From: Eutreptiella sp. 'Long Island Sound 2002'
Lineage: Eukaryota > Protista > Euglenida
Reading direction: 5' to 3'
Assembly (NCBI GenBank): GCA_964036045.1
Contig: OZ038378.1
Span: 158,162,001-158,226,000 of the forward strand
DNA: 64,000 nucleotides
Made by a program: the position numbers and the translations under genes. Positions 31,637 to 64,000 of this stretch are shown in pieces. Numbering within the stretch: position 1 is the first letter of the stretch; each line of letters opens with the position of its first letter. Below the pieces are notes generated by a model that was not told the origin of the DNA, made no database searches, and saw only the letters and a list, made by a program, of their open reading frames with translations.

Positions 31637-31656
31637 TGCAAGGATTCCATGGATAA

Positions 31657-31683
31657 CAAAAAATAGACACTCAGAAAATGAGC
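31657..31683 (-). other. Genomic copy of euglenid spliced leader (SL copy 1)
   Basis: Minus strand gctcaTTTTCTGAGTGTCTATTTTTTG, 20 nt upstream of the ATG; not followed by a GT donor. Confidence 0.9.
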
Positions 31684-31780
31684 AGTTGTACACAGGTCAA
31701 TGAACTGGGGCACCAATCAAACATCAATGTGCTGCTCGAAAAATAAAATGCAATGGATATTGCCACATACCAGGCAAATA

Positions 31781-40324: not shown

Positions 40325-41926
40325 TCAGCCCGTGGCTGAGGAAATGGGGAAGAGATCCACACGGACCCGCGTGGCCAGCCCGTTATCCACGCACCCAGCC
40401 ACCACCACCAATTGGTGGCTGCGGTGTGTTTTGGGAAAACGGGCTAGTGCGCCACCTTTTGACATTTTTATAGAAGGACTTGGACCGGTGCACGGCCATG
40501 CAACGCAACTTGCCGATTTGTTGGCGTATATGTTGCTTCTGTGCGGCGCCTGGCTCATTGAGTTTCTCCTGTGCCCAAAATGGGGTGGGTGTCTGGTTGT
40601 GTCTTGCCTGTCGTGGGCAGGCAGCCCCGGCAATAGGCGGCCCAAAATCAGGTGTGCGTGAGTTAGCGGTGCCTGGGTGTCGCTGAAGCCGAGACTGGCC
40701 ATTTGCGCCGTGAACTTTTTGGAGTGGGGAGCGTACCATCGTGCCACTGTTGGCTGCGGTGCCGGCTGCGATGGGATGTGACCCCCTATGCGCCACTTGA
40801 ACCCGAGCATAACCAAGGAGTGGTCAAAAATGGGCATACATAGTACACTGTAATGGATCCATGGTACGTTAGGTATTTGTTGGCGAACTAGTATGGTGTC
40901 CAGCCTGCGTGGTCTGCCATGGCGGGGGATGTGTCTGTTATATTGCCTTGTGTCGGGGTAATGGCGCGTGGCGAGGAGCAAGTCTAGTAGACTAGCGTCA
41001 TCTAGGCCTGCTTGCCATGGTCGGGTGGGGGCTGCAGCCCAGATGTCATCGTTGAAGTCCCCCATGATCGATGATTATATCGTAGGGGGTTATGGAGTGG
41101 ATGAACTAGTCCACTTCTGTCTTATCTTGTGGTGTAAACCTAGAGAGATGCGGACGATGGTGTGTCCAGGTCTGACCGGGGGCTGAAGGCGTAGAGCCGC
41201 AGCTAAGCCCCATGGAGAATATGTAACCTGCAGCATGTGTGGGTCCAGGGTGTTTTTGGCTAGGAAGGACACCTGGGGACCCGTTCCGAGCGCAGCGTAA
41301 CACTTGTATTCGTTGTGGAGGGTGCCGGTGGCTGCCTCTGGGAAGGCAAAACCGGGGTCATACTCCTGGATGCCACATAGGTCAATGCGGCGATCGCTCA
41401 CAAGGTATAAGATGTTAGCCCAACATTGTAGGCTCAGCCGGCCTTGCGCTCCCTGTACGTTCCATGTGGCGAGTTTCAAGTTGGTGTCCTTGTGCTGTGT
41501 GGTTTGCTTCAGGCACTGTAAATCCCGCTGTGTGTTTGTAACCCGATGTTTGGTGTATGCCTCAATGTCTTGTGGCGGTACAAGGGGTCCCCGCAGGGTG
41601 CGGGTGTGGTTGTTCAGTCGATAGATCCTACGTTGTCCAAGGTTCGGGTGTACGTCGCCCCAGATTAGGACCCAGGTGGCATTGTTGCGATGGTTGTACG
41701 GGCTGATGGGTTGATCCCACGGATATGCCGTGTCCAGGTTCCGGTGGACAATTGTCCCAGTGAGTTCATGACGTGGGACCGCCATGTGCCTGGTACCCTG
41801 GCAACTCGGCACCTGGAAAAGCCAGTAACACATCATTGGGGTGTGGGTCGTGGGTGGCACGATTGTGTATAAAGTCTGATGTCTGATGTCTGATGTAGCA
41901 TGTTGTGTTTGCAGTGTACACAACAA
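40325..41926 (-). pseudogene. APE endonuclease region of a second LINE family (frameshifted)
   Basis: KLATWNVQG, DLCGIQEY, GDFNDD, RRLDTIL, IFDHSLV. Confidence 0.8.
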
Positions 41927-47087: not shown

Positions 47088-50000
47088 CTACATCACAAGG
47101 GGGGGTGGGGGAGGTGGGTTTATGGTTTGGGTAATGGCGGTCCATAAAAGTCTGATGTCTGATGTCTGATGGCCAACTTGGTCGCTATACACAATCCTGG
47201 TGGGTGGCCGTGGTAGGCGTGGCAGTGCACGTGTATTTGTCGTATGGGTCTGTTGCGGGGTGTGAGCAGCCGCCATCCTTCGGTGTGTATCGCTGTGGGG
47301 GTTAGAAGCAGCAGTACAAGCAACGCTATGGCCTGGCTCAGCAGCGGGGGGCGCCCTGCCGCTTTCCCTTGGTTTGGGGTTTTTTTTTGGTGGTTTGTTG
47401 CGGTCCTTACTCTTGCCCTCTTCCGCCAGGGATGAGGAGGGTGTATTGGCCGGCAGTTTTGGTGGCCGGTCTAGTGACCTTGGGTCTGGTTTCTTCTTCT
47501 TGGTGGGTGGGGAGGTTTTCCCGGGGGTCTTGTGTGGTGTGCGGTTGTGTCCCTTGGTGGTTGGTTTGTGCGGTGTTTGGGATGAGGTGTCGGGTTCAGT
47601 GTGGCGTGATGGGTCTATTGGTGGCTCATCAACGTCCTGCGGTGGTGTTGATTGTTGGGTCACGGGTGATGATGACGAGGCCTCCACCTCCACGTTCCTG
47701 TTTAGTTCAGCAAAGATTGCGACGTCCCATTCCTGAATGTCGATGGGGGCCGGTCCTGCGAGCAGTTGTTTTTGAGTGTTTATGTCCTTGATGACTTTGG
47801 CTGTCATGATGCCTGCTCCCAATTGTTTGCCTACCTGCATGCGTTTGCGAAAAGGCGCGTCCTCCCCGGCGTCGAGGGGGATCTTGTGTGTTCAGCATGT
47901 GATCGATGCGGTCTGAGGCTTGCTGGTCTATGGTGTCGTCCCCTGGTGTCAAGTGCACGTACTCACCAGGCGCCACGCCGACGTACTAGCCGGCCTCCAA
48001 GCCGGCCTCCACGCTTTTGCGTGTTGGTACCTCAGAGAGGCGTATGTGCACCCCGCGTCGCTCCACATGTGGGCTCAGCGCACCAAGTGGCCCAGCATTT
48101 GAAGAAGGACGCCACTACGCGGGCCGTGTCTTCCCCTGCGCCCTGTGTCTAGCCTACGAAGATAGTCGGTGTATTGTGGCACAAAGGTTTCGGTGGTCGT
48201 TTTACGTCTCTAGACCGGTTGGCGGACTGCGTCCAGTTGTTGCGGTTTAGTATGGTGTTCTTCATCACGTGCACCGGTTCATAGGCTTTCATACCTCCGG
48301 GCAGCTGTGCAAGGAAGCGCCAGTCAACATCTAGTGAGAATAGGACTAGGAGCCTATATGTGTGGACTGGCCAGTATCTGCAGAGAAAGGATGTGATGCT
48401 CTGTCCCAACTCTAATTGTTCCCGGTTGATGTCGTCAATGAATGTTTGGACGGAGGAAATCTTGTCGCCTTTGTGTTCTGCATACCGTTGACGGGGCACG
48501 TATAGGCCCTTGTAGTTAGTTTCCACCAACCAGTACGGAATGGGGCTTCCAGCACTTTGTTCCTGTTGTTTGATTGTCTATAGGGTTTGTGCGAGTCTCG
48601 GTAGCAATTGCATAGGAATGCGTAGCTTCCATGCGCATGAGCCACTTTGTCGTGCCGTGTGCTCGGAGGTGCACTTCCATTTAAACACGTTTTCTGGGTC
48701 CTTGATGCTTTTCTTTTGTTGTTGACACCAGACTGAGTTCAGGCCATCCTGCCTACGGTGTGCGTGGGCACTCAGGCCCAGAAGGTACGTACAACATGTA
48801 TTGGGTAACCTACAGCTTCATGCGGGCGAGGCATGCCTCCGTGCTGGGGCACTGTGGGAGGGGACAATCTTTGGCTACTGCACATGTTATGCAGTGGTGT
48901 AGGCTGCCACGGCTTGGTCAAGCCCACCAAATTCAGAGCAGAGGAGTTGGACACGGGGGTAGACTTCGTGTGGGGGACGGGGCAGTGGGTTGGTTTCTAG
49001 GAGGAGTGCCGATAAGCACACATCCTCAGGCGGTAGAGTCAGGCTAACAATTCAGACCAGCATCGTCCCATCGGATGGGAGACCCAGTAAGTTGGATGCC
49101 GTCAATGAAGTGAAGAGTTTGTCGCACTAGGGACCCTATGAGATGCACTACGCAGGTGTCCCCCTGGTGATTGGTGCATTGGTGTTTGCCACGCACGCCC
49201 CCAAGCGAGGGGACAGCTGTGCGTTTTAGGAGCAGGTGGCGGACGATGTCGGACTCCGTGGCCACGTGGCGCTCCTTTTGAGACCAAGCACCCGTCAACC
49301 AATGGTCTGAGAGTGTCTCCAACCGCATCGCTTGGTTCTCAAAGTATCGCTGGACGGTCGTGGAGGCCACGCGGGAGAAGAGGGACTGTTTCTCACTCGC
49401 TACCCGGGTGTAGCTGTGGTGGCACCAGTCCCACATTTTTCGGTCATATCCCCCCCAAAAAACTTTCAGAGACCTTGCGGAAGGAAACCAGGTACGCCTC
49501 TTCCACTCGTTGGTAGGCCATGCGTGGCCACTGATTGTGTGCGCGCATGTAACGTGTCAACATGGTCGCCCAGTTCAAGTATTTCTGGTGGACCTTCGGT
49601 ACATGGTGCCGTGTGGTCCCACCGATAGTCCGCACTTGCCTAATATAGGCCTCGAGCAGTTGCCCATGGAGGGAGAGCGTGGGGAGGTACGAGTGGGCAT
49701 AGGAGTGGAGCTGCAGGAGGGGGCGTGCCAGTTGCGCCTTCCGGGCCAAGGAATGCCGAAACCAGAAATGAAGGCCGAGCATGGTGGTGCGCCAAGCGTG
49801 CAGTGTCTTCATGAGCCATTGGGTGAGCCGGCATGCTCGCATTGTGAGATGGAAGTGCGCCCTGGTGTGGGTGGCCAGGACTGGCCTAGCTGTGGTCCAC
49901 ATGCGGCGGGTGTGGGCGACCCCGCTCATGGTGTACAGGGGTCCCGGTTCCTGGCGTTGCTGTGGGTGCCTCCCTTGAGGGGGGGGGGGTCCGGTGCACA

Positions 50001-52187
50001 TGGAGAAGGTCTGCTCCCGCACTTAGTGACTTTCCAGAGGGGGAAGGTGGGGGAGTAGTAGCAGGAGCGCATTGGCAGTGTCAATGGTGATGGGGCCTTA
50101 TAATAGCTTGCGTGCCTTGGTTGCCGGGTTCTGACTTGCCCTTTCGGCCCCTGTGCGTGTTTGTGCTGTCGTTTTGGTTTGCAGTTGACTTGCGTGCGAA
50201 GTTTTCCGGGTCCTTAATGCTATTGTGGAGGCCACGTCGGATTGGTGTCGATTGATGCGTTTCATGAACGTGTCTCGGGTGCGGATTCCGTCTCAGGGGG
50301 ACATTCCACCAGCACCATGGTTTTTGCCGGCTCGGGTTCTAGCGTGTTTTTCGGGTTTTCCAGTCCTCCCTGTATGAGCATGCCCTTGGATAGGGCGAAT
50401 GCCTCGTGTGTTGGTTCGTGTCCCTGCTTGATGGTGTTGTCCAGGTGTAGGGCCATGATAGGTGTTGGCTCGAGGTGGTTTTTCGGCTGGTTGTGTTCGG
50501 CGGACCACTTATTGATGGGGAACTTATCACATTGGTACACCCCACAAACGTACTGTGATAGCTTCTGCAGGGGTGCGCTACGAAGGCAATCCATACAGTA
50601 GGTTTGGAGTAGTGTGGGGTCCTGTTTGTCTGCCTCGTAGGCAACCAACAGCTCGCGTGCTCTTGGTTCATTCAACGCGCAGAGGATCTGTTTCACCCGC
50701 TCATTCGCGCTACCTCCCCACTCAGTCTGTATAGCCGCCCTTTGCATATGTCACTCGTGGTTGCGCTGGGTGCCCGTTGACTGGGGGAGCAGGATGTAAG
50801 AGCGATTCCGGATATCTGGCGTGCCTTGGTGGCCCACCTCGGTGTGTACCGTGTAGTGTCCGGCGTCGACCATGTCAACCACTGTGTGTAGTCTGTCAGA
50901 GTCCGCCTTGTGTTGCACCATCATGACCTTCCGTAGTTCGTGTTGTGCATGGCTTGGTAGTTGGTATGTGTTTCTATCGTACCAGGTGCCGACCTATGTT
51001 TGCTTACGGATGTGTTCGGTAGTTACCAGCCGGTTGTGGCTTTTGGATAAGTATGCACTGAATTGTGCCTGCGCCTCGCTGATAGTTGCTATTTCTATTG
51101 TTTGTTGTTCCACGTCAGTGATGCTGGTTTGGTTTTTGGCTGTATTCAATTTTACTAGTTCCTCTGTGAGTTTATTTTCGGTGGGCACCGCCGAAGTGGG
51201 TATGTGTTGGCGGGGGTTGTCTGTAGGTGCGTGGAACATGCAGCCCTTTGGGTCCGATAGGGTGGCCAGAGGAGTATAGTTGAAGCCGAGGGTGGCGTTG
51301 TCTCTTGACCCGTGTCTGGGTATCGAGTTGGGGGCATCTGGTACGTCCAAGGTGTTTGTTTCCTCTGTGCGGGTCGCGGGGTCACTAGTGTTGTTGCCAC
51401 TTGTCAGTGGGTCGCAGGCCTCGACAGAGGGGGGGGGGGGGGTAGCAGTGATGGTTGCGGGTTCATGTGTGCCGGTATTGGGGGCGGGGGCCACAAGGGC
51501 CGTGTTCCCGGTATGAGTCTTGGATTGTTGTTGGAATGTCTCTGCGAGAGTGCGTACTATACCTTCGCCGGTGGTGGTGTCAGGAACAGGCCCCAGGTTG
51601 GATTCTACGTCCCCGTCTTCAGTGGGGTCAGGGATCCACTGGCTTGTTCGGGGGGGTAGTAGTGCGTCGTACATTCTGCGTGTGTTGCGCAGGTGTGTGT
51701 GCGATGTATGTGCACCTTGTGTCCCTTGTGTTGGCAACATGGCGGGGTACTGTTCCCACGCGCACAGGTCTGCGTGGGCATAAGGGGGTGCCGGTGTCCA
51801 TTCGGCACCTATGTTGCATGCCAACAGTAAGTTGTGGTGCCCAGCATGTGGCTGCTTGTCGAGCCAAGAGGGCAGGTGGGTAGCCGTGCTGAGGCTGTCT
51901 GCGGTGTCTACCATGTTGTTGAGTTGGTGGCGGGCTGCCCAGTAGCCGGATCGGTCGGAGCGGAGAAATGCTTCCCAGATCTGGCCAATAGGCTCGTATC
52001 TGGGGCTCCATGTGTTATGTGCTATGTGCGGCGGTCTTGCCTCTTCGTTGGTGTAGAAGAGTAGGCGTCGGTTCAGGAGTTGAATGTAGACATTCACAAA
52101 GGTTGTGTTGCCTGCCTGCATCAAGGGTGCTCCATGGAACAATGAAGGGGGAGACCACAGTTCACCACCATTGCAGCCCACACGCAC
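47088..52187 (-). mobile_element. Large decayed ORF1-like region of a non-LTR element
   Basis: Chain of minus-strand ORFs (50994-52187, 50262-50747, 49444-50022, 49044-49436, 48149-48529, 47088-47840); shares the aaag(tctgatg)3 motif (about 47147-47172) with the region 5' of the APE at 41875-41895; contains a 2A-like motif. Confidence 0.5.
51588..51638 (-). other. 2A-like (StopGo) peptide, variant WIPDPTEDGDVESNLGP
   Basis: Matches D(V/I)ExNPGP except L (CTG) for P (CCG), a single C-to-T change. Confidence 0.6.
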
Positions 52188-52942
52188 ATATGTGCTGTTA
52201 TTCCGCCTTCACACCTTGCAAAGAGGTTGTACAACACAGCATATGGTCAATTGGCAACCTGCAGCACCTAAGAAGGGTTGCCAAAGAGCCACTATGGGGT
52301 TACACATGCCCACCATGGTCCCCTGCAGAAACCGAGAGCCACTGGTACAAGGGTGAAGAAATCCACCAAAAAGGGGCGAAAAAACCCCCCGGAAGCAGTG
52401 AAAAAAAAAACCCAAATGGGAGAAAATTAGCCCATCATGTTGGGACATCGAAAGACGGAGACTCTCCGGCAACCTTTGCACTGCCTCAGACAACTCGTCA
52501 AGAGGTTGTGGTGCGAAAGAAGAGGGTACATCAGATGGACCGCTTGGTATTGCAATTGAAGAAGTGCTGTGTTGGGCGCCCGTGTGGTGCATTGGAGACT
52601 GGGGAACATTTGGTTAGTTGGTTGTATTCCTCCCCACACTGGGAGTTTTGTAGCCACTTTGACTTGCACCCCCCCCCCCCCCGCCTCATCGAAGCGAAAG
52701 TCCGCGGATGAAAATCACAGAAAAATTGCGTGCAACCCGCAGTTGTTCACTGGACAAAAGTCAGCCAGACACCAATCCCCTGGGAAGTGCCCAGAACTTT
52801 TCTTGCTGATCAAACCTCCATAATTCTGCAAACATTCCTTCTAGCGCATGAACAAACTTGCACGGTAAAAATTAGCAGATTCATAACAGGGCACTGATGG
52901 AATCCTTTCGGCATTACACTGGATTCAGATCTGCATGTTGTC

Positions 52943-55900
52943 TTACGGCTGGTGCTTTGGTGGGTTTCCTTTGAGATTCTTCAATTTGGAAATATCAATT
53001 GATGGTGCAGGCTGCAATGGCTGTGGGCAGAGGTCCATCCGCTGCTTGAGATAGTGCACCACTTCAGTATGCCCTGGAAGGCCTGCCAGCTCCACAGGGG
53101 TCCGTCCTGCGGCATCGGTCAGAAACATTTGGGTTTCAACACCCGGCAACGCCAGCAACCATTCCAGGGCGTCTCGATGGCCATGCCACGCGGCCTTGTT
53201 GACGACGCCATGACCCCAAAAATTCATTCTGGTGAAATCAGACCCCTTGTGCAAGAGCCACTTGCACATTGGGATGCTGCCGGACGCTGCAGCCCAGATC
53301 GGGGCTGTGCACCCAGAGTTATTTTGTCCCTCGAGGTCCATACCTTGTTGCAGCAACCAATCCGCCACATCAATGGACGCACCCCAGACTGCCCAATGAA
53401 AGCAATTGATCCCCTTCTTAGTCTGTGCGTGCAGATTGGCGCCGCGCTCCACCAGCAACTGTACGGCCTGGAGGTGGCCATTGCGACATGCCCACATCAA
53501 TGCCGTCCTTCCCTCCTTGTTGGGGCTTTCAATATCCACACAATGCTCCAAAAGCAGCGCTACCACATCCACGTGTCCATGTCCTGCAGCCCATGCCAGC
53601 GCATTCAGGCGATTCTTGTCTACTGCTCGCCGGGGATCCCACCCTCGGGCCAGCAGCTCCCGCAATTGCTGTACGTGCCCCATTTTTGCCTGGTACAGAC
53701 CTGATTGCGGGTCCGCTGCGGTCTCCAGCCGCAGCCCGTCCTGATACCGCGCGCTTCTCTCTTCCTTGGAGCCCCCCTTGTGTTGCTGCTCCTTCCCAGA
53801 GACCCCATTGACAGGCAGCTGTTGCTCCTGCCCGAATACACGAGGTTCTGGTGTCGAAACACATGGTGGCAGCCCCGAGACTGGTCCCACGGGTGTTCTC
53901 AGTTCTGTGGAGGCCTGTCTCAGCACTGATTCTGCGATGGCGTTCAGGGTCAGGAACTCAAACGCCCATCCGTCCGGCAGATTCACCCCAAACTCAGTGC
54001 AGAGGGCCTCGTGTAAAGGCTCTGCCAGCATCTCATCGACGCCAAGATGTGATAATGCGACGTCACAGGGCAGCGATGCGCCTGTTTTGAGGGGCTTCGC
54101 ATGTTTGCCACTCAACACATCCTCCACTAATTCGGATGCTCGAGTCAAAACGCTCCTAAGCGCCGACGCCTCTGATGCCGTCGTCTGTGCCAACGATGCT
54201 TCTGTGCGACAACGCTGCAGCGATTCATGAATGAAGAGACCGATGGCAGAGATTGTGGGATGCTCAAACACTAGCGAACTGGGCAGCCGCAGTGGAGCGC
54301 TTTCGTCGCACGCCGTTTGCAGAGCCGCAAAGAAATGCACCGCCTGCACAGAGGCCATGCCGATGGCCTCAAGCGACCGGCCCAGATCTGCCTCCCCAAG
54401 GCCGGTCCCCAGCACTTGCTCCGCACACTCTCTGACCATCGCTGTCACGTCCGCCTCCGAATCCAAAGCCCGGGATCGCCGACCACCGCCACCGGCGCCT
54501 CGATGCGCGTCCGCGGCCTCGGCTGTGGCTTTGTGCACGGCGTCGGCCACCAAAGCGACGGTGCACAGCTCCGCCGGAATGCGGCCCAGCGCTCCGCCCG
54601 GCCCCGGAGCATGCGCCGCCGAAGGCCCGGGCGCCGCCATCGCATCCTCCGCTGAACACTGCGCGACGTCGTCCCCCACGGCCTCGAGACTGATCTCCAG
54701 CAGCAGCTCCGCCGGGATCGCGAGGACGCATTCGGTACAGTCCGCGTCCAATTCCGGTGCCGTCCGGCGCGTCCGCGCCACAAACGCATCCACCGTCCGA
54801 AGGAACTGCAGCATTTTGGAGTTCTTCGCCGTCCGCACAAACGGAATCACTACGAATCGCAGGTGCGCCTGCAGCGCCACGGAGGCCAAGTACCGCAGCG
54901 CCTCATACTCGACCCCGCGATGCAGCACGCGGCAGCTCATCATCAACGAGTCCACGTATAAAGCCCCCGCAGCCTCTGCACGGCACAGCAGGTCGGTGCC
55001 GGTGCACTTCTGCGGCGCAGCGGCCGGGGCCGCAGAAAGCGCGCGCACGCGCTCGGGGCCCGCGGGCACGCGCACATCTTCGCACCGCAACGCGTCCGCT
55101 GCTTGGCCTTCGCTACGCCCCCCCTCCGCCCCCGCCACTGCCCCGTGCCCTCGCCCGTCCACGTCCACTGCCCCGGCCTCGGCCACGTCCACGTGTTCCG
55201 TCGCTGCCCCTCCGGCCCCCGCCTCCCTCGTCGTCTGTGCCCCAGACCCTTCGGGCCAAAGGCCCCGGCGCCACAGCGCCACCAGGACGACGCCGTAGTC
55301 GCCGAAGCGGTCCCGCACCCGAGCGCACGCCACGGCCCGGGCCTCGGCGGACAGCCACGCCCGGACTTGGGCCTCCGTCCGGCGGATGGTCGTGGAGTTG
55401 AACTGATTGGAGCGCTGGGACAACTCCGCGACGCGAGGGAGCTCGTCGGGGCTTGCGGCGTGAAGGTCGACCTGCACCTCCAGCGATCGCAGGAACTCTG
55501 CGAAGCTCAATCCGGAGGTCCGCTGCACCTCATCCCTCTGCGCCTGTTCCTGGTACAGGGTGGTCCGCGACAACGACTCCCGCGTTGGAGCAGCTGCCGC
55601 ATTTTGAGTGCGCAGAACCCTCGAGCCCCAGACATCAAAAGCCCAATGATGATCCAGTGTGGCACGGGCCTTGCCTGTGGGATCGTGTTCACCTCCAATG
55701 GGCAGATGCACACACGTCACCTGCGGCAGTGCCGTTTGAACCTCATGGATTTCCAGTGGATTGTCATCAATGAAAACGAATGCATCCAATCCCAAATTCA
55801 ACATCTCTGCCAGGGCTTTGATATTTGTGCTCTTGGGCTGCCAATTCACCTTCCGTGCGGCGACATCCTCGAGACCGATGCACATGTCAGTGGGTCGGTT

Positions 55901-56719
55901 GCGAAATACTGCCAAAACATCCGCCTCGTCATTCTTGCTGGAGAGGCAGATAAGCCTCCCAGATCTCTGTAGCTGCAGCAGCTTTCGTTGCAACAGTAAA
56001 TGACACTCCGTCATTCGAACTCCTTTCGGACCGAGCTCACTGACGGCACCGTCCCACAATGTGTGATCGCAATCTGTGACGAACACTTTGAAGGTGTTCT
56101 GGTGCAGACATCCGAAGAGACGCCGGGTGATGAGTGTGGCCACAGCAACGTAGTACTCCTTGGTGTACGGAACATGGCCCATACGGAAAGTGTCCGGTGA
56201 CCAATAGCCTGATTCCAGCGGGTACCATTTGTCTAGACAGCACCAGGATACGTAACTGACCCCTTGCAATTCACTGAACGCCGTTTCCAAATAATCAGAC
56301 ATGGCGGTCAAGCCATGAATACACTGCTCGTTTGACATGATGCATGGCGCAGGCTTGCATGCGATGATCAGAAGTGGCGCAAAGGATCCGGGCCGAGCAC
56401 AAAAGCCTCTCACTGCGGCTTCGAAATCCCATACGGTGCGCCACAATGATGCCTCAAAGTCCTTGAGCTGAGGCTCGGGATATCCATCCTTTGCCGGGAT
56501 CCAATCATCGAGTCGCACCAACACAGCGTTCAACACGTTCGAAGAGTCCTTAAACAAACTTGCTGGCTTCAATAATTCGGGGAACACGCTGTCAAATTCC
56601 GCAAATTGCACATGAATGTCCATTCCCAAGTAGCTTGCCCAAAAGTGAAGAGTGGACTGCAACGGCTCCACAGTGAAATTGGAAGACACCACGACCCTCG
56701 GAAAAATTGCATTGTGCAT
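52943..56719 (-). CDS. Intronless FkbH-like (HAD-IIIC)-ACP-ankyrin repeat fusion protein (about 1258 aa), SL-bearing retrocopy
   Basis: First ATG after the SL is at 56719 (MHNAIF). FkbH motifs VTDCDHTLWDG, CLSSKNDE, NWQPKS, FIDDNPLE, QRSNQFN, DRFGDYG, MSCRVLHRGVE; carrier domain GMASVQA..LPSSLVFEHPTI; degenerate second carrier GVDE..EFGVNLP; about 7 ankyrin repeats at the C-terminus. Confidence 0.88.
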   Translation of the reverse strand: MHNAIFPRVVVSSNFTVEPLQSTLHFWASYLGMDIHVQFAEFDSVFPELLKPASLFKDSSNVLNAVLVRLDDWIPAKDGYPEPQLKDFEASLWRTVWDFEAAVRGFCARPGSFAPLLIIACKPAPCIMSNEQCIHGLTAMSDYLETAFSELQGVSYVSWCCLDKWYPLESGYWSPDTFRMGHVPYTKEYYVAVATLITRRLFGCLHQNTFKVFVTDCDHTLWDGAVSELGPKGVRMTECHLLLQRKLLQLQRSGRLICLSSKNDEADVLAVFRNRPTDMCIGLEDVAARKVNWQPKSTNIKALAEMLNLGLDAFVFIDDNPLEIHEVQTALPQVTCVHLPIGGEHDPTGKARATLDHHWAFDVWGSRVLRTQNAAAAPTRESLSRTTLYQEQAQRDEVQRTSGLSFAEFLRSLEVQVDLHAASPDELPRVAELSQRSNQFNSTTIRRTEAQVRAWLSAEARAVACARVRDRFGDYGVVLVALWRRGLWPEGSGAQTTREAGAGGAATEHVDVAEAGAVDVDGRGHGAVAGAEGGRSEGQAADALRCEDVRVPAGPERVRALSAAPAAAPQKCTGTDLLCRAEAAGALYVDSLMMSCRVLHRGVEYEALRYLASVALQAHLRFVVIPFVRTAKNSKMLQFLRTVDAFVARTRRTAPELDADCTECVLAIPAELLLEISLEAVGDDVAQCSAEDAMAAPGPSAAHAPGPGGALGRIPAELCTVALVADAVHKATAEAADAHRGAGGGGRRSRALDSEADVTAMVRECAEQVLGTGLGEADLGRSLEAIGMASVQAVHFFAALQTACDESAPLRLPSSLVFEHPTISAIGLFIHESLQRCRTEASLAQTTASEASALRSVLTRASELVEDVLSGKHAKPLKTGASLPCDVALSHLGVDEMLAEPLHEALCTEFGVNLPDGWAFEFLTLNAIAESVLRQASTELRTPVGPVSGLPPCVSTPEPRVFGQEQQLPVNGVSGKEQQHKGGSKEERSARYQDGLRLETAADPQSGLYQAKMGHVQQLRELLARGWDPRRAVDKNRLNALAWAAGHGHVDVVALLLEHCVDIESPNKEGRTALMWACRNGHLQAVQLLVERGANLHAQTKKGINCFHWAVWGASIDVADWLLQQGMDLEGQNNSGCTAPIWAAASGSIPMCKWLLHKGSDFTRMNFWGHGVVNKAAWHGHRDALEWLLALPGVETQMFLTDAAGRTPVELAGLPGHTEVVHYLKQRMDLCPQPLQPAPSIDISKLKNLKGNPPKHQP

Positions 56720-56731
56720 GCGAAATAGAAG

Positions 56732-56761
56732 CGGAAAAAAACAGACACTCAGAAAATGAGC
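56732..56761 (-). other. Genomic copy of euglenid spliced leader (SL copy 2)
   Basis: Minus strand gctcaTTTTCTGAGTGTCTGTTTTTTTCCG, 12 nt upstream of the ATG. Confidence 0.88.
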
Positions 56762-56764
56762 TAA

Positions 56765-57960
56765 AGGGCAATGAAGCAACGGATACTCAGCTACCCAACG
56801 CCCCTGTGTCACAGGCGACTGCTCATAGCCGGTGACTGCTCTGCTGCACTGCAGCACTTCCAAACCAGCACTGAATGCTGCCTTGAGTTCGCCCGGCCTG
56901 TGGCTATCGAATGTCTCTTAGGCTGGTGAAAGGGGCCATGAGCAACGGATACTGAGCTCGCATATACCCCCATGACACAGGCATATGGCCACCACTTTCA
57001 GTTCATTGTTTTGCCTTGCATCACTGCAGTACAAACCAGACCCGAATGTTGCCTTGAGGTCTCTGTGCAAGGCGGCTATCGAATGTTTCATGGGCCGCCT
57101 GGGTCAGCTCTACTCCCTCCCACAGGTGCCGGTTAGCCATAACCTTGCATCTGGTTGCCAGTTAGCATAAACCTTGCATCTGGGAGCTCACCCCCACCGT
57201 AATTCACACAAAAACAAAAGCAACTGCTCCGTGGTTGGCCGGCCGGGGCGCTGCTTTTTGTTTGGAGGGTGTTGCTTCTTATTTCCTCCGTGCTGCCGTA
57301 CCCACTCCACTTCACCGTCTGTGGAAAAGGTCCAATGCGAGGTGTGACATAACACATCCTCTTCAGCAGAGCCACCACTCTGCTTGCCAGCTCAGCGTCC
57401 CACGTCCACAGACACAAGGGGGTTTCAACCATCTCAACATCGCATGTCTACAAAAACAGGGGGATTCAGGGCGTAGACTAGTCCCGAATGTTGCCCTCAG
57501 GTCACCGCGCAAGGCAGGTTTCAAATGGTTCATGGGCCTCCTGGGGCTCTTCACCCTCCCACTGGTGCCGGTTAGCCAGAAACCTTGCATCCGGGGGTTC
57601 ACACTTCACCGTTATGCACACAAAAACATAAGAAACGGGTCCGTGGTTGGCCGGTTGGGGCTGAGCTTTTTGTTTGGGGGGTGTTGTGTGGTGTTTACTC
57701 CGTGTAGCCATACTCATTACACTACCCCGTTTGGGAGATGGTTCATTGTGGGGTGTGGCATCACACATCCCCTGTAGCGGAGCCACCACTCTACCTTGCC
57801 ATCAGTAGCAGTGTACCACAACAAAGCAACAGCCTGACTCTTGTGCCATTACCGAGTCTCCAAACCACTTAGCACTTCACTTCCATAAAAACAAGGGGGT
57901 TTCGGGGCGTTTGGGTTTTCCCCACCCCCCTCAGGATTCGAACTACCGACGACACTTCGT
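56765..57960 (-). mobile_element. Cluster of SINE-like fragments with an internal duplication of about 440-bp period
   Basis: SINE body ends at 56765 and 56933; 57040-57390 is similar to 57481-57800; B-box-like agttcgaatcct near 57935-57946 with the same head-adjacent sequence as the 12 kb copy. Confidence 0.6.
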
Positions 57961-58202
57961 GGAAGACTAGGCATGTACCGGTGTACCAAAGACTACGGTG
58001 ACAACTCAGGCCCAACAAGGGCTCAAGAGCTCGCATATCAGGGGCTTGGGAACTAAGCACGGTTCAAATGAAGGCTCAGGTGAAAGGCAGTAGGGGCTCG
58101 GATTCAGTCTCTTGCTCTTTCGCATCACTCGAGGTTGACTCAGGTCCTGCAGTGAGGGGCATGTGGCCCACTGGGCTCTCATGACAACCAAACACCGGCA
58201 TT

Positions 58203-58694
58203 TCACCTAACTCTCTGGGCATTGAACGCAAGAGGCAAAATTGGATACACGCCTCCGACCTCACTCCTGTGTTTGCCCCATAAATCATACCTTTGATTTG
58301 GCTTACCACACCCGGGTTTCCACAAATCCAAAGGCAATGCCCCCCCCCCCCCCCCTTTTGTGTTTGCCCCCATGACGATGTCTTTTGATCCACCCGCAAG
58401 CCACACTGTCACCCTGACTTCCCACCCAAAGGGGTGGTGCGGCGTGATCTGTTTCCTGATCCACCTCACGTGTCCCACATAGTGAAGCTTGGATTTCACA
58501 TCCCATGAGAGCCAAGCCAGCACGGAGAAAGTTTCGTGTTCAATGATCATAATCGGGTCGCCTGCAGCCGTCATGAACCCATTCACAAAGCGAGACACGG
58601 ATTCCTTTGCTAGTCGCACTTGAACTTCTTGGTGTTCGTTCCGGCTTCGCAAATCACCAATGTTTGCCCTGTTGTCCTTCTCGGCCGTCGCCAC
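58203..58694 (-). other. Unassigned protein-like ORF fragment
   Basis: DLRSRNEHQEVQVRLAKESVSRFVNGFMTAAGDPIMIIEHETFSVLAWLSWDVKSKLHYVGHVRW reads like real coding sequence; no motif recognised. Confidence 0.25.
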
Positions 58695-60281
58695 TGCTCC
58701 CTTGGTCCGCGCCTAGTGGACCTTGAATTGCTGGTGCTGGATGTGGCCACATCCAACCATTTGAGTACATCAGTGACATTGACAAAATCTCAAAAGAAGG
58801 GTCAGTTGCTGGCTGTGGGGTGTGGTCTCACACTTCCCATGTGCATTTCATTAGCTTTCAGTAGATGGCGGTAGATCGATGAAATTGATGACATCTCAAA
58901 AGAAGGGTCCGCTGGCTGTGGGATGTGATCTCACACAAGCATAAACAAAGCCACCACTCCGCCCTACCAAAGCACCCTTGCGGCGTTTGGCAGACCACCG
59001 CTGAGTGTCACTGACATCCGTGCTACACTGGCTATTGTCTGACGACAGGCCGTCACACTACCACTCTCCCCTCCACCCTTCATGAATCTCTGAACAACCG
59101 CTATCCCCCACCACGCTTGTGGTTTGAATGTTGTTTTGTAGGGTGACAATGATGACAAGAGGGAAGGGGGAGATGTGGGTGAGGAGGGTGAAGAGGGTGA
59201 GGAGGGGGGGGGGGGTTGAGGATGGGATGGAAAGTGAGGGTGAGGGTGAGGAGGGTGGGGTGGGTGAGGGCGGTTGGGAGGGGCAAGAGGGTGTGGAGGA
59301 AGAGGGCGAGGAGGGCAAAGAGGGCAAGGAGGGACAGGTAGGGACGTGGATGGACATGGACGTTGTGTTAGACGTTGACATGGACATCGTCCCACAAGAG
59401 CGGTGTCCAACCCACCCACCCACCCACGTGTGGCTCCTTCGCCCATTGCCAGTGAGTTGGGGTGTGGTTGCACCAGGGGTCGGAGGGGATGAGCCAGGAG
59501 ACGGTAAGGCCCAGGCCTTTGGCTGCCAAAGTGGACATGAGGGGCCCCCTTGTTGTGTGTTTGTGGGGGCGCTTATATTAGTCAGGGACAATTTAGGAGC
59601 CCCGCTCGTGCACACACTCCAACGCTTGCGTCAAGGAATCCGCTGCTTCCGTTAACAGGCCAGCCTCATTTGCCTCCCACAAGAATAAGGTCACAACCCA
59701 CCCCGCCCCGCCTGCTTATGAAGCTCTCAAGCAGGTTCAAATTCATCAAACTTGTCTGATTTCATTCCTTTGTTTTTGATTACCTCAGACTTACGTGTGC
59801 CTCGTAAGTGTTCGGTCAGACGGACCGGGTCTGTGTGGCAGATAAAGGGGGAATCCTTGCACTGCGCGCGCACTGCGCGCTACTTTTAGATTATGTTCCC
59901 CCCGAAGAGCCCCTAGCACGCCCCTTGGAAACACCCTTAGAATTAGGCGACCCATATGTGTTATACTTTGGGGGCGCCTTAAGTGCAGTGTGTGTGCAGT
60001 GCGCGCACAGTGCAACTATTTGGGCGCCTGGCCGTAGTAGAAACCCATACTTTGTGGTACTTTGGGCATCATTTTTGCTTGGTAGTAGGTATTGATGCAT
60101 TGGGGATCTGGCATTTTTGGATTTTCACCCTGTTTCACCTTTCTACTTTTTTGCACACATTTTTTGCCCATTTCCACCACATCTACTCTTTTTCTTGGTT
60201 GATTGATATGGTGATACACTTTGAGGGTGCCTGCTACAGGACATCATACTTCCCTCCTCATTTCTCAGGCCCATTTTCTCC

Positions 60282-60692
60282 ATGGATCTCAGTATTGGGG
60301 ATAGGGTGTTCTACACCTGCTCCAATGGCCTGCGACCTCCTACCACGGTGGTTGGGACGGGTGAAGACGGACTCCTCCACTTGGAATACTACCAAGATGG
60401 GTTGAGAGTCGTGAATCGGCAATGCAAGATGGAGTACATCTCCTTTGCCATCCCAAGTTCAACCTCGCCACCTGATTGCCGCTGCCTCTCTCCGCTGCCC
60501 AACACACAGCCAAGTCCCCCCCCCAAAAGGCCCCTGGTCCTTCACCATGCCACAAGAACCGGGAACGTCCCCCTCAAGGTCCCTTCCAGTCCAATTTATT
60601 ATCCCGTGTGGAGGACCCACATATCGTCGGGTGATGGTAGGATGTATATTTGCAACTTGTACACTGTCACCAGCGGATGCAGCGGGAGGTGA
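60282..60692 (+). other. Short ORF with a possible SH3/Tudor-like N-terminal segment
   Basis: MDLSIGDRVFY...VVGTGEDGLLHLEYY followed by a Pro-rich tail; weak similarity by eye only. Confidence 0.25.
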
Positions 60693-61499
60693 CTGCCCTC
60701 ATCTCCATTACAAAAAATAGCCAATAGTGGTGACTTTTGCAAAAACCTAATGGGTATGGACATCATGCACTCACTGACACGCAGGGGATGGAAATGCTTC
60801 GGACCCGTGTGGTTTGGCCCACAAAAATCAGTGCCGTGCTCACTTGGCTGGTTTGTAAAACTTTGGATCAGGCCTTCTGGGGCGCTTAGTAAGAAAAAGG
60901 AGCTACCATGTCTTTCTTGGGCCCTTTGGCTGGGTTATAGCCCCCATGTGTTGTACAGCCCTTCCGACTTTTCCTATGGCTGCATTTTTGTGGTATTCTC
61001 ATGCTTGAGGCACATCTATATCAAAGCTATGCTGATGTGACTGTGATCACACAAGCAGTTCGGCAACCCCCATGAAGTTCACCCCTACCACTCCAAGGAG
61101 CAGAGGTATCATCCTTCAAGGAGGCAAATACCAAAATGAAGTGGACAGCTTTGCCTCCCTGTGTAGGTTCAGTTTGTCCGCGAAAAAAATTGAACGGTTT
61201 TACGAACAAAGCAAAACACAATTCAAGCATATTGTGGCTCCTCGCTGCTTTCCCAGGCAAAATTGCAAAAACAATCTGGAACAAATAAGACAGGCAAATA
61301 AAACCCCAGTTAGCAAAGCTAACAATCGGTCCCATTTGCACTCCCAATCAACCTGGATATGCTGTTGTTCGTTTTGGTGTCATGCTCTAAAGCGCCCTAT
61401 GGTGTATGCCCCGGCTATTGTTTGATTCGCATGGTTGTACACGGCTTCAAGCAGTTCAAGGTGTCCTTTCATCCGTAACCGTTGTTGTTTGCCAATGGG

Positions 61500-62750
61500 G
61501 GCAAATAGAGCCGGAACGCACAGCATAGAAGGTAAAAAATGGTAGGAAAAAGCTGGGTATACTGCTTAGGATTTTTGAGAATGCTCAGCATGTATCCTCA
61601 ACAAATGAGACTCATATCGCAGGGTACATTTCAGAAATGGGGACCTCAATTTCTCCCTTCTCGAGCGACTTCAGAATTTTCATGGTTGGGAACTTTTTGG
61701 ACTAGTTGCTGGTACACATCACTCTAAAAATCCACGGAAAAAATTCAGTACCCATTCCAATACTGCTCACTGAGCGCTCCGAGTTGATGACTTTTAGTGG
61801 GTTCATTCCAAGATCTTTAAGAAATGCACGGCATCCGTCGCCGAGCGGGGAATCAACAGACTCCAGCAAAACCACATCCGGAGTTCTGATTTTCATACCA
61901 TCAGCGAAATTTCTTTGCACTGTAACACACATCAACATGGGTTCATCTCCTTGGAACTGATTTCTGGCTTTTGGGGGCAAGTATAGATCCTTCGGGCCAT
62001 CGAAGCGCATCAAAAATCCCACCTACAAATCCAGTCCAGCATTAAGATATCGTTCATTTTGGACGACATAGTCATGTTCATCCAATCCTGCAGGACCACC
62101 AGCTGCTCGCTGTTGGTAGTCGTCGGCATCTCCTTGCCTGGGGTCCCATACTTCTTGGGAGTCTTTGGCGTTCATTCGGCCTAACCTCCTTGTGTGGGGG
62201 ATCGGGGAAGTGATGGGCCGTAGAAACAGCTCGATGCGTTGCTCAGTATGCAGCAACCGCTGCTCTATAGGTAGTGAAGGTGTCGATCACCTCCGCAATG
62301 CACAATGAGGAACAAGAAGTCTGGGGCAGGAAATACGGGTAGAGGATGAGCTTCAGGAGCTATGTGAACCCTGTTGACAGTCTCCTCCCCAGGAAATCCA
62401 CTATGGCGTGCAATGGTTGAAACCACTATAGGACTTTTGGATCAATATTTGGTAGCCCCAGTGACAGACGGTCCTTGCTGGTCTTGTCTTGCGTGGGGTG
62501 TGCTGACGAACCGTACTACTTGTTTGTTGACCAAGACCGGCTGCACTCAGCTGGCAATGGGCTGCTGTGAGCCCCTGGGCTGTCAAAGACAAAGCAGCTG
62601 AGCCCGTCGTTAAGGAGTGCGGAGAGGGGTTGTCCTGTATGATCGTGTGTTCGTATATCGGTGCGCAAGACATCAAAAATAAAGGGCCTACAGCTGGCCC
62701 ACGTGGACACCGATGCCGGGATTTGATGGCACCGGAAAAAAAATCAACAA
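61500..62750 (-). pseudogene. Decayed processed pseudogene downstream of SL copy 3
   Basis: Protein-like segments broken by stops and frameshifts (FDVLRTDIRTHDHTGQPLSALLNDG; ERYLNAGLDL*VGFLMRFDGPKDLYLP; ESVDSPLGDGCRAFLKDLG). Parent gene not identified; 3' limit uncertain. Confidence 0.55.
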
Positions 62751-62773
62751 GAAAAAATAGACACTCAGAAAAT
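62751..62773 (-). other. Genomic copy of euglenid spliced leader (SL copy 3)
   Basis: Minus strand ATTTTCTGAGTGTCTATTTTTTC. Confidence 0.9.
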
Positions 62774-62925
62774 ACATTCAGGTTTGCCCCGGGGTGGCTC
62801 GCCAGTGTTTGGCGCAATTGTATGCCGTAGTACAACAAGAATAGCGTCGATGAGAGGGGGCAGCCCTCTGTCATTCGCCTTGTGGGGTGTATGGGTAATT
62901 CACGGCCGTGCACAAACAACACGGC
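62774..62925 (-). pseudogene. LINE RT fragment truncated at SL copy 3
   Basis: IHPTRRMTEGCPLSSTLFLLYY..HPGANLNVF, ending just before the expected xxDD catalytic motif. Confidence 0.75.
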
Positions 62926-63599
62926 GGGTGTGGGGGAATGTTTGTCCGGAGCACGCCCGGCGCGCTACCTTTCTATTAACTATCCCGACTTCAGCCCGAA
63001 ATTTACCCTCTGATGGAGAAGGCCCCCCAAATAGACCATGATGGACTGCGCACCTTCCCTACAAAGCACGTTGCATAATTAGACAATAGCCGTGAATTCA
63101 GCAACTCCAAATGTCATTTGTATTTTACTTAACAAACGGTACTTTGCCTTTACCTTTCCCATAGATTTCGCTATGGTAATGAGTCCCCAAGCCGCAAGCG
63201 GTTTGGACGGCGCTTCTGCCTCACGTCACAAGAACGAAGTGCAAACTCAGTATTCGCTACATCACCCCTGCCTTCTCGGGGTCCCCATGGTGGGGAGAAA
63301 TCAATATGGCTACATTACCCCTGCTTTCTTGGGGTCCCCATGGTGGAGAGAAATCAACCTAGTAAGGAGTGGATGTGGTGGAAACGAGCAAAAAAAAAGG
63401 AAGAAATTGGTGAAACTGGGTGAGAATCCAAATATACCACATCCCAAATGTGAAAGAAGCATCAAAACACCCGTTGTCAAACAACAATAATGCCCATAGT
63501 ATCACAAAGTATGGGGTTCTAGGACGGCTAGACGTCCAAATAGTTGCACTGCGCGCGCACTGCGCTTAGTGCACCCCCTAAAAGGTCACCAGTGGGGCA

Positions 63600-63810
63600 T
63601 GGGTCAAAAAAGATGCCCGGCGCGCTAACGCTCCCCCTGTGTTCTGGTATACTTCCCCAATGAACCGCAAAAGGGGTTCGGGGGCATCTGCGGTCTTAAT
63701 GAGGTCCGTGAGCATAAGGCTAGGGACAGAGGGGAAGGTGTTAGCCACGTCCAGCAGGGCCAGATGAACTCCGTGAGTATGTAAGTCGTTCAAGATCACA
63801 AAGGAAGGAA
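63600..63810 (-). pseudogene. Upstream RT fragment of the same decayed LINE
   Basis: HLALLDVANTFPSVP..PEPLLRFIGEVY, the RT D-x-x-K-A-F region; separated from 62774-62925 by about 0.7 kb of other repeats. Confidence 0.65.
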
Positions 63811-64000
63811 AAGCCTGCACGCGCGCACACGGTGCGCGCTGCCCGCGCAGATGTACAATGGGTTGGTGCAGTGGTCTGTTTGAATGCCACAAATCCACGA
63901 GACAACAATATTCATTGGGTTGGGGGGGTCAAAAATGTCGAAAAAAATTGACCCCCCCATTTTTGGGTCGAAAATCATGAATCTTTTGGTTTTTTCAATT

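Follow-up and report, generated by a model that had tools for sequence, protein, structure and literature searches.

Can a euglenid load glycerate onto a carrier protein of its own making, and if so, how would the loaded unit reach its user? FkbH enzymes draw off an intermediate of glycolysis for the synthesis of polyketide and peptide natural products, and the question is raised by a 64,000-nucleotide stretch of DNA from Eutreptiella sp. 'Long Island Sound 2002' (assembly GCA_964036045.1, contig OZ038378.1, positions 158,162,001 to 158,226,000), hereafter the window. On its minus strand the window encodes a protein in which an FkbH-type region is followed by a Ser-bearing carrier domain, a second carrier fold without that Ser, a linker and ankyrin repeats. 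We consider it probable that the encoding sequence is a real and intact nuclear gene, present in a single copy and retro-inserted from an mRNA capped with a spliced leader (SL), and that its product is, by analogy with the bacterial family, a free-standing, self-loading glycerate module. The gene and its parts, with residue numbers of the protein and the basis of each assignment, are as follows.

52943-56719, minus strand: complete intron-free coding sequence, 1258 residues, with a TAA stop at 52943-52945
56120-56701, minus strand: FkbH N-terminal subdomain of the long type, residues 7-200 (alignment; without a Pfam model)
55625-56095, minus strand: HAD-IIIC phosphatase subdomain, residues 209-365 (TIGR01681, TIGR01686, PDB 3slr)
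54770-55597, minus strand: FkbH C-terminal subdomain, residues 375-650 (second TIGR01686 stretch; DRFGDYG block; S595-C596-R597)
54974-55261, minus strand: Ala/Gly-rich low-complexity insert of ~96 residues (487-582), inside the FkbH C-terminal subdomain
54215-54457, minus strand: carrier domain 1, residues ~755-835, motif GMAS, Ser790 codon 54350-54352 (PF00550, model)
53900-54178, minus strand: predicted carrier-fold domain 2 without attachment Ser, residues ~848-940, motif GVDE, Glu896 codon 54032-54034 (fold search)
53711-53899, minus strand: disordered linker, residues ~941-1003 (model)
53030-53710, minus strand: seven ankyrin repeats, residues ~1004-1230 (Pfam, model)

The minus-strand frame is open across 52943-56863, and position 56719 was taken as its start, being the first ATG past the SL-like sequence described below. 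A frame of 1258 codons with four independent significant domain matches is not a product of chance, and every item listed by the sequence-only reading, an earlier model-made annotation of the letters, was found where that reading had placed it. The coding sequence has a GC content of 0.60 vs 0.54 in the flanks, and the window bin 54001-56000, which holds the Ala/Gly-rich insert, reaches the window maximum of 0.64. The window is part of a chromosome-scale contig; in the genome, of 2.28 Gb and 2317 contigs, a DNA search detected the FkbH-ankyrin gene as a single copy. A second assembly (ENA ERZ25074135) has an identical open reading frame (ORF) on a contig of 171 kb. Furthermore, a 4581-base unitig with zero differences covered 52284-56864 in two of four further runs (X1 and X2), and shorter pieces covered most of the frame in X3 and X4; all four runs come from one study and are probably the source data. 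Apparent joints in these runs, such as a 444-base in-frame skip (54714>55159) and a joint 52688>56766, were discounted, since they had only 20-26 letters on one side and lay in repeats or G/C runs.

The FkbH region was assigned by an NCBIfam profile search, in which the FkbH profile TIGR01686 was matched with an E-value of 4.6e-71 (239.6 bits vs a cut-off of 146.65) and the HAD-IIIC profile TIGR01681 with 52.7 bits (cut-off 35.75). The N-terminus aligns from residue ~7 with bacterial FkbH-ACP proteins (ACP, acyl carrier protein), with the FT.EP and GHVPYT blocks in common, and the phmmer stretches of the large search described below begin at query residues 5-10. A targeting extension is absent at the N-terminus, so the protein is probably cytosolic. 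The HAD motifs are complete: motif I is D216-x-D218-x-T220 (DCDHTLW, D216 codon 56072-56074), motif II S261, motif III K296 and motif IV D318-D319. A sequence search of the PDB matched 3slr to residues 206-340 (E 3.4e-17), that is to the HAD part only, and returned no solved full-length FkbH. All invariant columns of FkbH alignments of 15 and 28 sequences are retained in the window protein, namely D216, D218, S261, N263, K296, D318, R471, G473, S595-C596-R597, R601, E604, N633 and the DRFGDYG block; the T220 and D319 columns, near-invariant among the 28 sequences, are retained as well. HAD motif I and the FkbH-type N- and C-terminal motifs, which the sequence-only reading had noticed, are indeed present. 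The SCR motif is invariant in both alignments, and its Cys596 (codon 54932-54934) is, by analogy, presumed to be the acyl-enzyme site that carries the glyceryl unit. The bacterial and dinoflagellate relatives are without the ~96-residue insert, and a paralogue described below has a shorter one in the same position. An unspliced intron was rejected as the source of this insert, given the unbroken frame, the processed state of the copy and the paralogue's insert at the corresponding place within one exon.

Carrier domain 1 matches PF00550 over residues 762-827 (E 1.6e-7) with 31.9 bits vs a cut-off of 20.8. This bears out the Ser-bearing carrier (GMAS) of the sequence-only reading, for which a segment failing to match carrier profiles would have counted as a refutation. 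In the structure model, where the first carrier forms a four-helix domain, Ser790 stands at the N-terminus of helix II (model residue 50 = residue 790; predicted local distance difference test, pLDDT, 74-91). The second carrier-like domain lacking the Ser had also been read correctly, with the fold coming from the structure model, while its sequence score (PF00550 14.6 bits, E 0.039) is below the cut-off. When domain 2 was folded alone, in a model built with almost no alignment, the top 50 PDB matches in Foldseek were without exception ACPs or peptidyl carrier proteins, with query-normalised template-modelling scores mostly of 0.5-0.73 and a probability of ~1.0. Glu896 is placed at the start of helix II, in a structural position equivalent to that of Ser790, albeit with lower model confidence than in domain 1. 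Since Glu896 replaces the attachment Ser, domain 2 cannot be a functional carrier; as modelled, it is a carrier fold unable to carry phosphopantetheine. A complex prediction for the FkbH core and carrier domain 1 (score 0.31, mark 0.34) is evidence neither way on binding.

The remainder of the protein consists of a disordered linker, modelled at pLDDT 25-36, and the ankyrin region. The linker is conserved neither in length nor in sequence in the paralogue. The ankyrin region was matched by Pfam Ank_2 (E 9e-33), Ank_4, Ank, Ank_3 and Ank_5, with E-values ranging from 1e-15 to 1e-33, and seven ankyrin helix pairs were modelled at pLDDT 82-97, which settles the earlier estimate of about seven repeats at seven. 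The structure prediction that the sequence-only reading had proposed thus yielded both carrier folds, the disordered linker and the seven repeats; the model of residues 741-1258 drew on an alignment of two paralogue exon fragments only. The profile scan proposed alongside it matched FkbH, carrier domain 1 and the ankyrin repeats. A Pfam scan of the 1258-residue protein at E-values up to 0.1 gave no match to a ketosynthase (KS), condensation (C), adenylation (A), thioesterase (TE) or reductase (R) domain, in line with the earlier remark that KS, condensation and thioesterase domains are absent.

One further FkbH gene was detected in the same genome, on another contig (C14, ~40.085-40.092 Mb; locus L011), and no protein match in this genome is closer to the window protein. 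Its order is FkbH, carrier (GMTS), Ser-less carrier fold (GLDE), linker and ankyrin repeats. A single L011 exon spans the HAD motif and both carrier folds and reaches into the ankyrin repeats, so that the FkbH-ankyrin junction lies within that exon. The identity to the window protein is 40% for the FkbH part, 36% for the carriers and 52-57% for the ankyrin part, with the exons compared singly and never joined into a gene model; the first ~120 residues were not located within the 9.9 kb examined (C14 40084000-40093900). At least two GT-AG introns, of ~1.1 and 2.2 kb, interrupt L011 at the equivalents of K211|V212 and Q1125|G1126. Because the same domain order and the same Ser and Glu recur in a diverged, intron-containing paralogue, the fusion is old and real and no artefact of annotation or assembly. 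As far as the comparison of the two genes goes, the FkbH-carrier-ankyrin fusion has been kept over a long divergence.

We investigated how widely this architecture is distributed by searching 1.84 billion representatives exhaustively with HMMER, using residues 1-1000 as the query. This search returned 3451 proteins at E<1e-30; among the best 150 of these 3451, which were the ones inspected, the closest match apart from the gene itself was 44% identical, and euglenid data are sparse in the collections. Over residues ~8-650, the identity to bacterial proteins is 35-44%. In bacteria, a carrier behind FkbH is the most frequent arrangement, and the pair occurs by itself or joined to TE, C-A, KS or R domains. 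Apart from the window's own protein, none of the 215 retrieved proteins contained ankyrin repeats, and neither these repeats nor a second Ser-less carrier fold occurred elsewhere in the 215 or in 80 named bacterial loci taken with 3-kb flanks. The gene itself was all that came back from word searches with the carrier-carrier region and from looking up the exact 1258-residue product. Two metagenome scans contained no relative of the fusion and at most a bacterial FkbH at 37% identity, and the ESM Atlas gave no usable match. In the literature searched, FkbH enzymes were described from bacteria only, with no eukaryotic FkbH enzyme and no paper on FkbH together with Euglena. By these searches the FkbH-ankyrin combination is unique among the proteins and loci examined, and the FkbH-carrier fusion itself is already known. 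For the sequence-only reading, an architecture already common in databases would have counted as a refutation. Ankyrin repeats joined to FkbH were found nowhere else searched, and the FkbH-carrier part is common in bacteria; what is new here is limited to the second carrier fold, which lacks the Ser, and the ankyrin tail.

The FkbH phylogeny, likewise proposed beforehand, was run as a quick maximum-likelihood tree, with 84 cores (HAD plus C-terminal part) as input. Both euglenid paralogues and two dinoflagellate transcripts, one from Gymnodinium smaydae (EukProt EP00928 P013268) and one an MMETSP cluster, formed one clade amid sequences of many bacterial phyla; the support was 99 in the Shimodaira-Hasegawa-like approximate likelihood ratio test (SH-aLRT), in a tree with long branches and a short search. 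The grouping is supported by derived motifs that the euglenid and dinoflagellate members of this clade have in common, among them RLICLSS, HHWA.D.W and SCRVLHRGVE. Judged by the 3451 proteins of the large search and by the tree, the FkbH part is of the bacterial type and nested in an otherwise bacterial radiation. The earlier description of a bacterial-derived glyceryl module agrees with this nesting, but the bacterial origin may be indirect, as the dinoflagellate transcripts are the nearest relatives. That the host is a eukaryote, as had been stated, was corroborated by the 2.28-Gb genome, the GT-AG introns of the paralogue and a spliced leader of the Euglena gracilis type.

This spliced leader bears on how the gene arose. 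The elements concerned are listed below.

56732-56755, minus strand: genome-encoded spliced leader TTTCTGAGTGTCTGTTTTTTTCCG, 12 nt upstream of the ATG
31657-31677, minus strand: second SL copy, one mismatch, inside the start of an 871-residue intron-free frame (29078-31693, minus strand)
62751-62771, minus strand: third SL copy, one mismatch, overlapping a 173-residue ORF (62401-62922)
56932-57170, with a partial copy at 56766-56927, minus strand: dispersed repeat of ~240 bp ending ...GTTGCTCATGGCCC, in two tandem copies just upstream of the gene

Compared with the corresponding stretch of the E. gracilis SL primer, whose sequence is printed in PMC5654406, the SL in front of the gene has mismatches at 2 of 24 positions. 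Three SL matches were found in the window, where 0 are expected by chance. The dispersed repeat gave 4744 candidate genome matches at first look and has a read depth ~300-950x that of the gene. Its second copy ends ~9 nt before the SL, and the SL copy at 31657 also has a similar element end before it. As a repeat end precedes two of the SL copies, a systematic joining of repeat and SL-cDNA may be at work, for instance by template switching. The 871-residue frame at 29078-31693 has EF-hand domains near its C-terminus and is probably another SL-bearing retrocopy; the 173-residue ORF is without a Pfam match.

Two marks of a retrogene are found at the locus: a DNA-encoded SL just before the start codon, and the absence here of the introns of the paralogue. 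We propose that the SL stands in the DNA and the introns are missing because the gene was copied back from an SL-capped mRNA. The position of the SL before the ATG shows that there once was an SL-capped mRNA that covered the complete frame and with it the FkbH-ankyrin junction. The sequence-only reading had concluded from the SL that a parent gene is normally expressed. The former existence of an SL-capped mRNA stands; the parent does not, as none is present in the assembly and this copy is the gene. Most probably the window copy is an orphaned retrogene that has become the gene of its lineage. Positions 52688 and 56766 were considered as the borders of an empty insertion site and rejected, since 11 other copies of the upstream repeat have no similarity to the downstream flank.

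What, then, would the protein do? The mechanism that we consider probable is modelled on the characterised bacterial family (OzmB, the tetronate enzymes and the FkbH domains of nonribosomal peptide synthetase (NRPS) loading modules). 1,3-Bisphosphoglycerate would acylate the enzyme, presumably on Cys596, the HAD site (Asp216/Asp218) would remove the 3-phosphate, and the phosphopantetheine thiol on Ser790 would receive the glyceryl unit in cis. More speculatively, since no KS, C or TE domain lies downstream, the glyceryl-S-ACP would be used in trans, and the Ser-less carrier fold and the ankyrin repeats might dock the partner, be it a separate polyketide synthase (PKS) or NRPS, an oxidising enzyme set or an acyltransferase.

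Several observations weigh against this reading of the gene and its product. The ~96-residue low-complexity insert interrupts the catalytic C-terminal FkbH subdomain. The Asp of the usual GxDS motif is replaced in carrier domain 1 (GMAS here, GMTS in the paralogue), so phosphopantetheinylation is not assured. The role of Cys596, the substrate and the docking role are all assigned by analogy. The locus is surrounded by transposon debris without biosynthetic neighbours. No RNA evidence for the locus was seen: the only runs holding it (X1-X4) behave as DNA, with contigs that cross both flanks at the depth of neighbouring unique DNA, and the protein-collection searches gave no transcript-derived match to the fusion. 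As regards retro-insertion, no A-run that could be a poly(A) remnant lies between the stop codon and 52300, no flanking direct repeat was found as a target-site duplication, and protein and DNA searches of the assembly detected no parent gene, which speaks against a textbook retrocopy.

Some of these points would also fit a silent processed pseudogene, in which case the sequence would be a functionless young retrocopy, open only because it is too recent to have decayed. The SL relic and the lack of introns mark a retrocopy, the surrounding DNA is rich in transposons with the gene directly behind a repeat of thousands of copies, and there is the missing RNA evidence. We nevertheless regard this explanation as decidedly unlikely, because the copy is the only one of its lineage in the assembly, with the parent absent, and because 3774 coding bases are free of stops and frameshifts, with every family-invariant residue intact, although the SL has already changed at 2 of its 24 positions. 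In addition, the fact that no poly(A) tail survives argues against a very recent insertion. An artefact, be it bacterial contamination, an assembly mis-join or two genes read as one, was tested and is not supported. The 35-44% identity of the FkbH core to bacterial proteins could suggest contamination, but the frame is uninterrupted and lies on a contig of chromosome scale in a 2.28-Gb genome, the difference-free unitig in X1 and X2 and the second assembly reproduce it, a Euglena SL lies upstream, and the paralogue combines spliceosomal-type introns with the same domain order. Taken together, these data make an artefact hardly credible.

A different kind of alternative accepts an active enzyme and gives it a role other than donating glyceryl units to a polyketide or peptide assembly line, such as the handling of a different phosphorylated acid, the further processing of the tethered glycerate, or the acylation of a lipid or protein, where the ankyrin repeats would set the location instead of docking a synthase. 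In bacteria, glyceryl-ACP is oxidised to hydroxymalonyl-ACP, and lactate starter units have been proposed for bryostatin, so that parallels exist. Such a role would fit the lack of downstream assembly-line domains and of a cluster. It would also fit the closest bacterial relatives, which include many uncharacterised FkbH-ACP and FkbH-ACP-TE proteins without a PKS or NRPS domain in the same protein, and the dinoflagellate relatives, which are without any carrier and have an N-terminal part that departs from the bacterial subdomain. The catalytic signature, however, is identical to that of the glycerate-loading family, and both paralogues retain the Ser-bearing carrier, which renders another role unlikely in our view. 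The self-loading glycerate module encoded by an orphaned retrogene remains the reading that we prefer.

If this module is active, it would let euglenids and, via the related transcripts, dinoflagellates make their own carrier-bound glycerate, with a Ser-less carrier and an ankyrin platform substituting for downstream assembly-line domains. It would then offer a handle on the starter units of protist natural products, a compact case of a bacterial loading module rewired for trans delivery in a eukaryote, and an example of a retrogene turned sole copy of its lineage. A bolder scenario, which we think quite unlikely as a whole, would have a euglenid-dinoflagellate FkbH lineage taken from bacteria and made into a soluble self-loading carrier in euglenids, where the dead carrier and the ankyrin repeats would dock to a separate synthase and supply it with glyceryl, hydroxymalonyl or glycolyl starter or extender units. 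Labelling studies have reported glycolate starter units in some dinoflagellate polyethers. If true, the scenario would describe a trans-acting starter-unit shuttle without a bacterial counterpart.

An Rfam scan of window positions 50000-64000, around the gene, gave no match. A run of 14 C (G on the gene strand) lies within 52669-52687 on the plus strand, ~255 nt past the stop codon. An ORF of 246 residues at 40325-41065 on the minus strand has a weak Exo_endo_phos match below the cut-off and is probably the remnant of a non-long-terminal-repeat retrotransposon endonuclease.

How does this gene compare with known systems? In-cis loading of glycerate from 1,3-bisphosphoglycerate by FkbH onto a carrier has been described for bacterial assembly lines (PMC10099666, PMC13122637). 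The bacterial FkbH-carrier units, of the vioprolide, corramycin and suomilide/banyaside type as well as the stand-alone FkbH-ACP and FkbH-ACP-TE proteins, resemble the window protein in that a long-type FkbH is directly followed by a carrier and in that the invariant residues are identical. They differ in what comes next: in bacteria the carrier is either the last domain or is followed by C, A, KS, TE or R domains, whereas the window protein goes on with a Ser-less carrier fold and ankyrin repeats and also has the ~96-residue insert in its FkbH part. OzmB, FkbH and GdmH, glyceryl transferase-phosphatases of methoxymalonyl-ACP pathways, and the tetronate enzymes of the Mad7/Mad14 type share the HAD phosphatase and the C-terminal subdomain, and in these systems a glyceryl-S-enzyme is formed and its glyceryl unit then transferred to the ACP (OzmB mechanism, PMC9057759; stand-alone FkbH with ACP, PMC7489565). 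There, however, the enzyme and the ACP are separate and encoded in an operon with dehydrogenases, an O-methyltransferase or a FabH-like tetronate former, whereas the gene described here has no cluster and a fused ACP. OzmB, moreover, has 366 residues and is too short for an N-terminal subdomain of ~200 residues in addition to the HAD and C-terminal parts. For the HAD plus C-terminal core, no relatives are nearer than the dinoflagellate FkbH transcripts, but these lack the carrier, the ankyrin repeats and the low-complexity insert, and have a different N-terminal part. By eye, this part resembles an RNA recognition motif, and it is unrelated to the bacterial N-terminal subdomain. The L011 paralogue has the same domain order, the Ser and the Glu in the two carrier folds and an insert at the matching site, and differs from the window gene in possessing introns and in being 36-57% identical.

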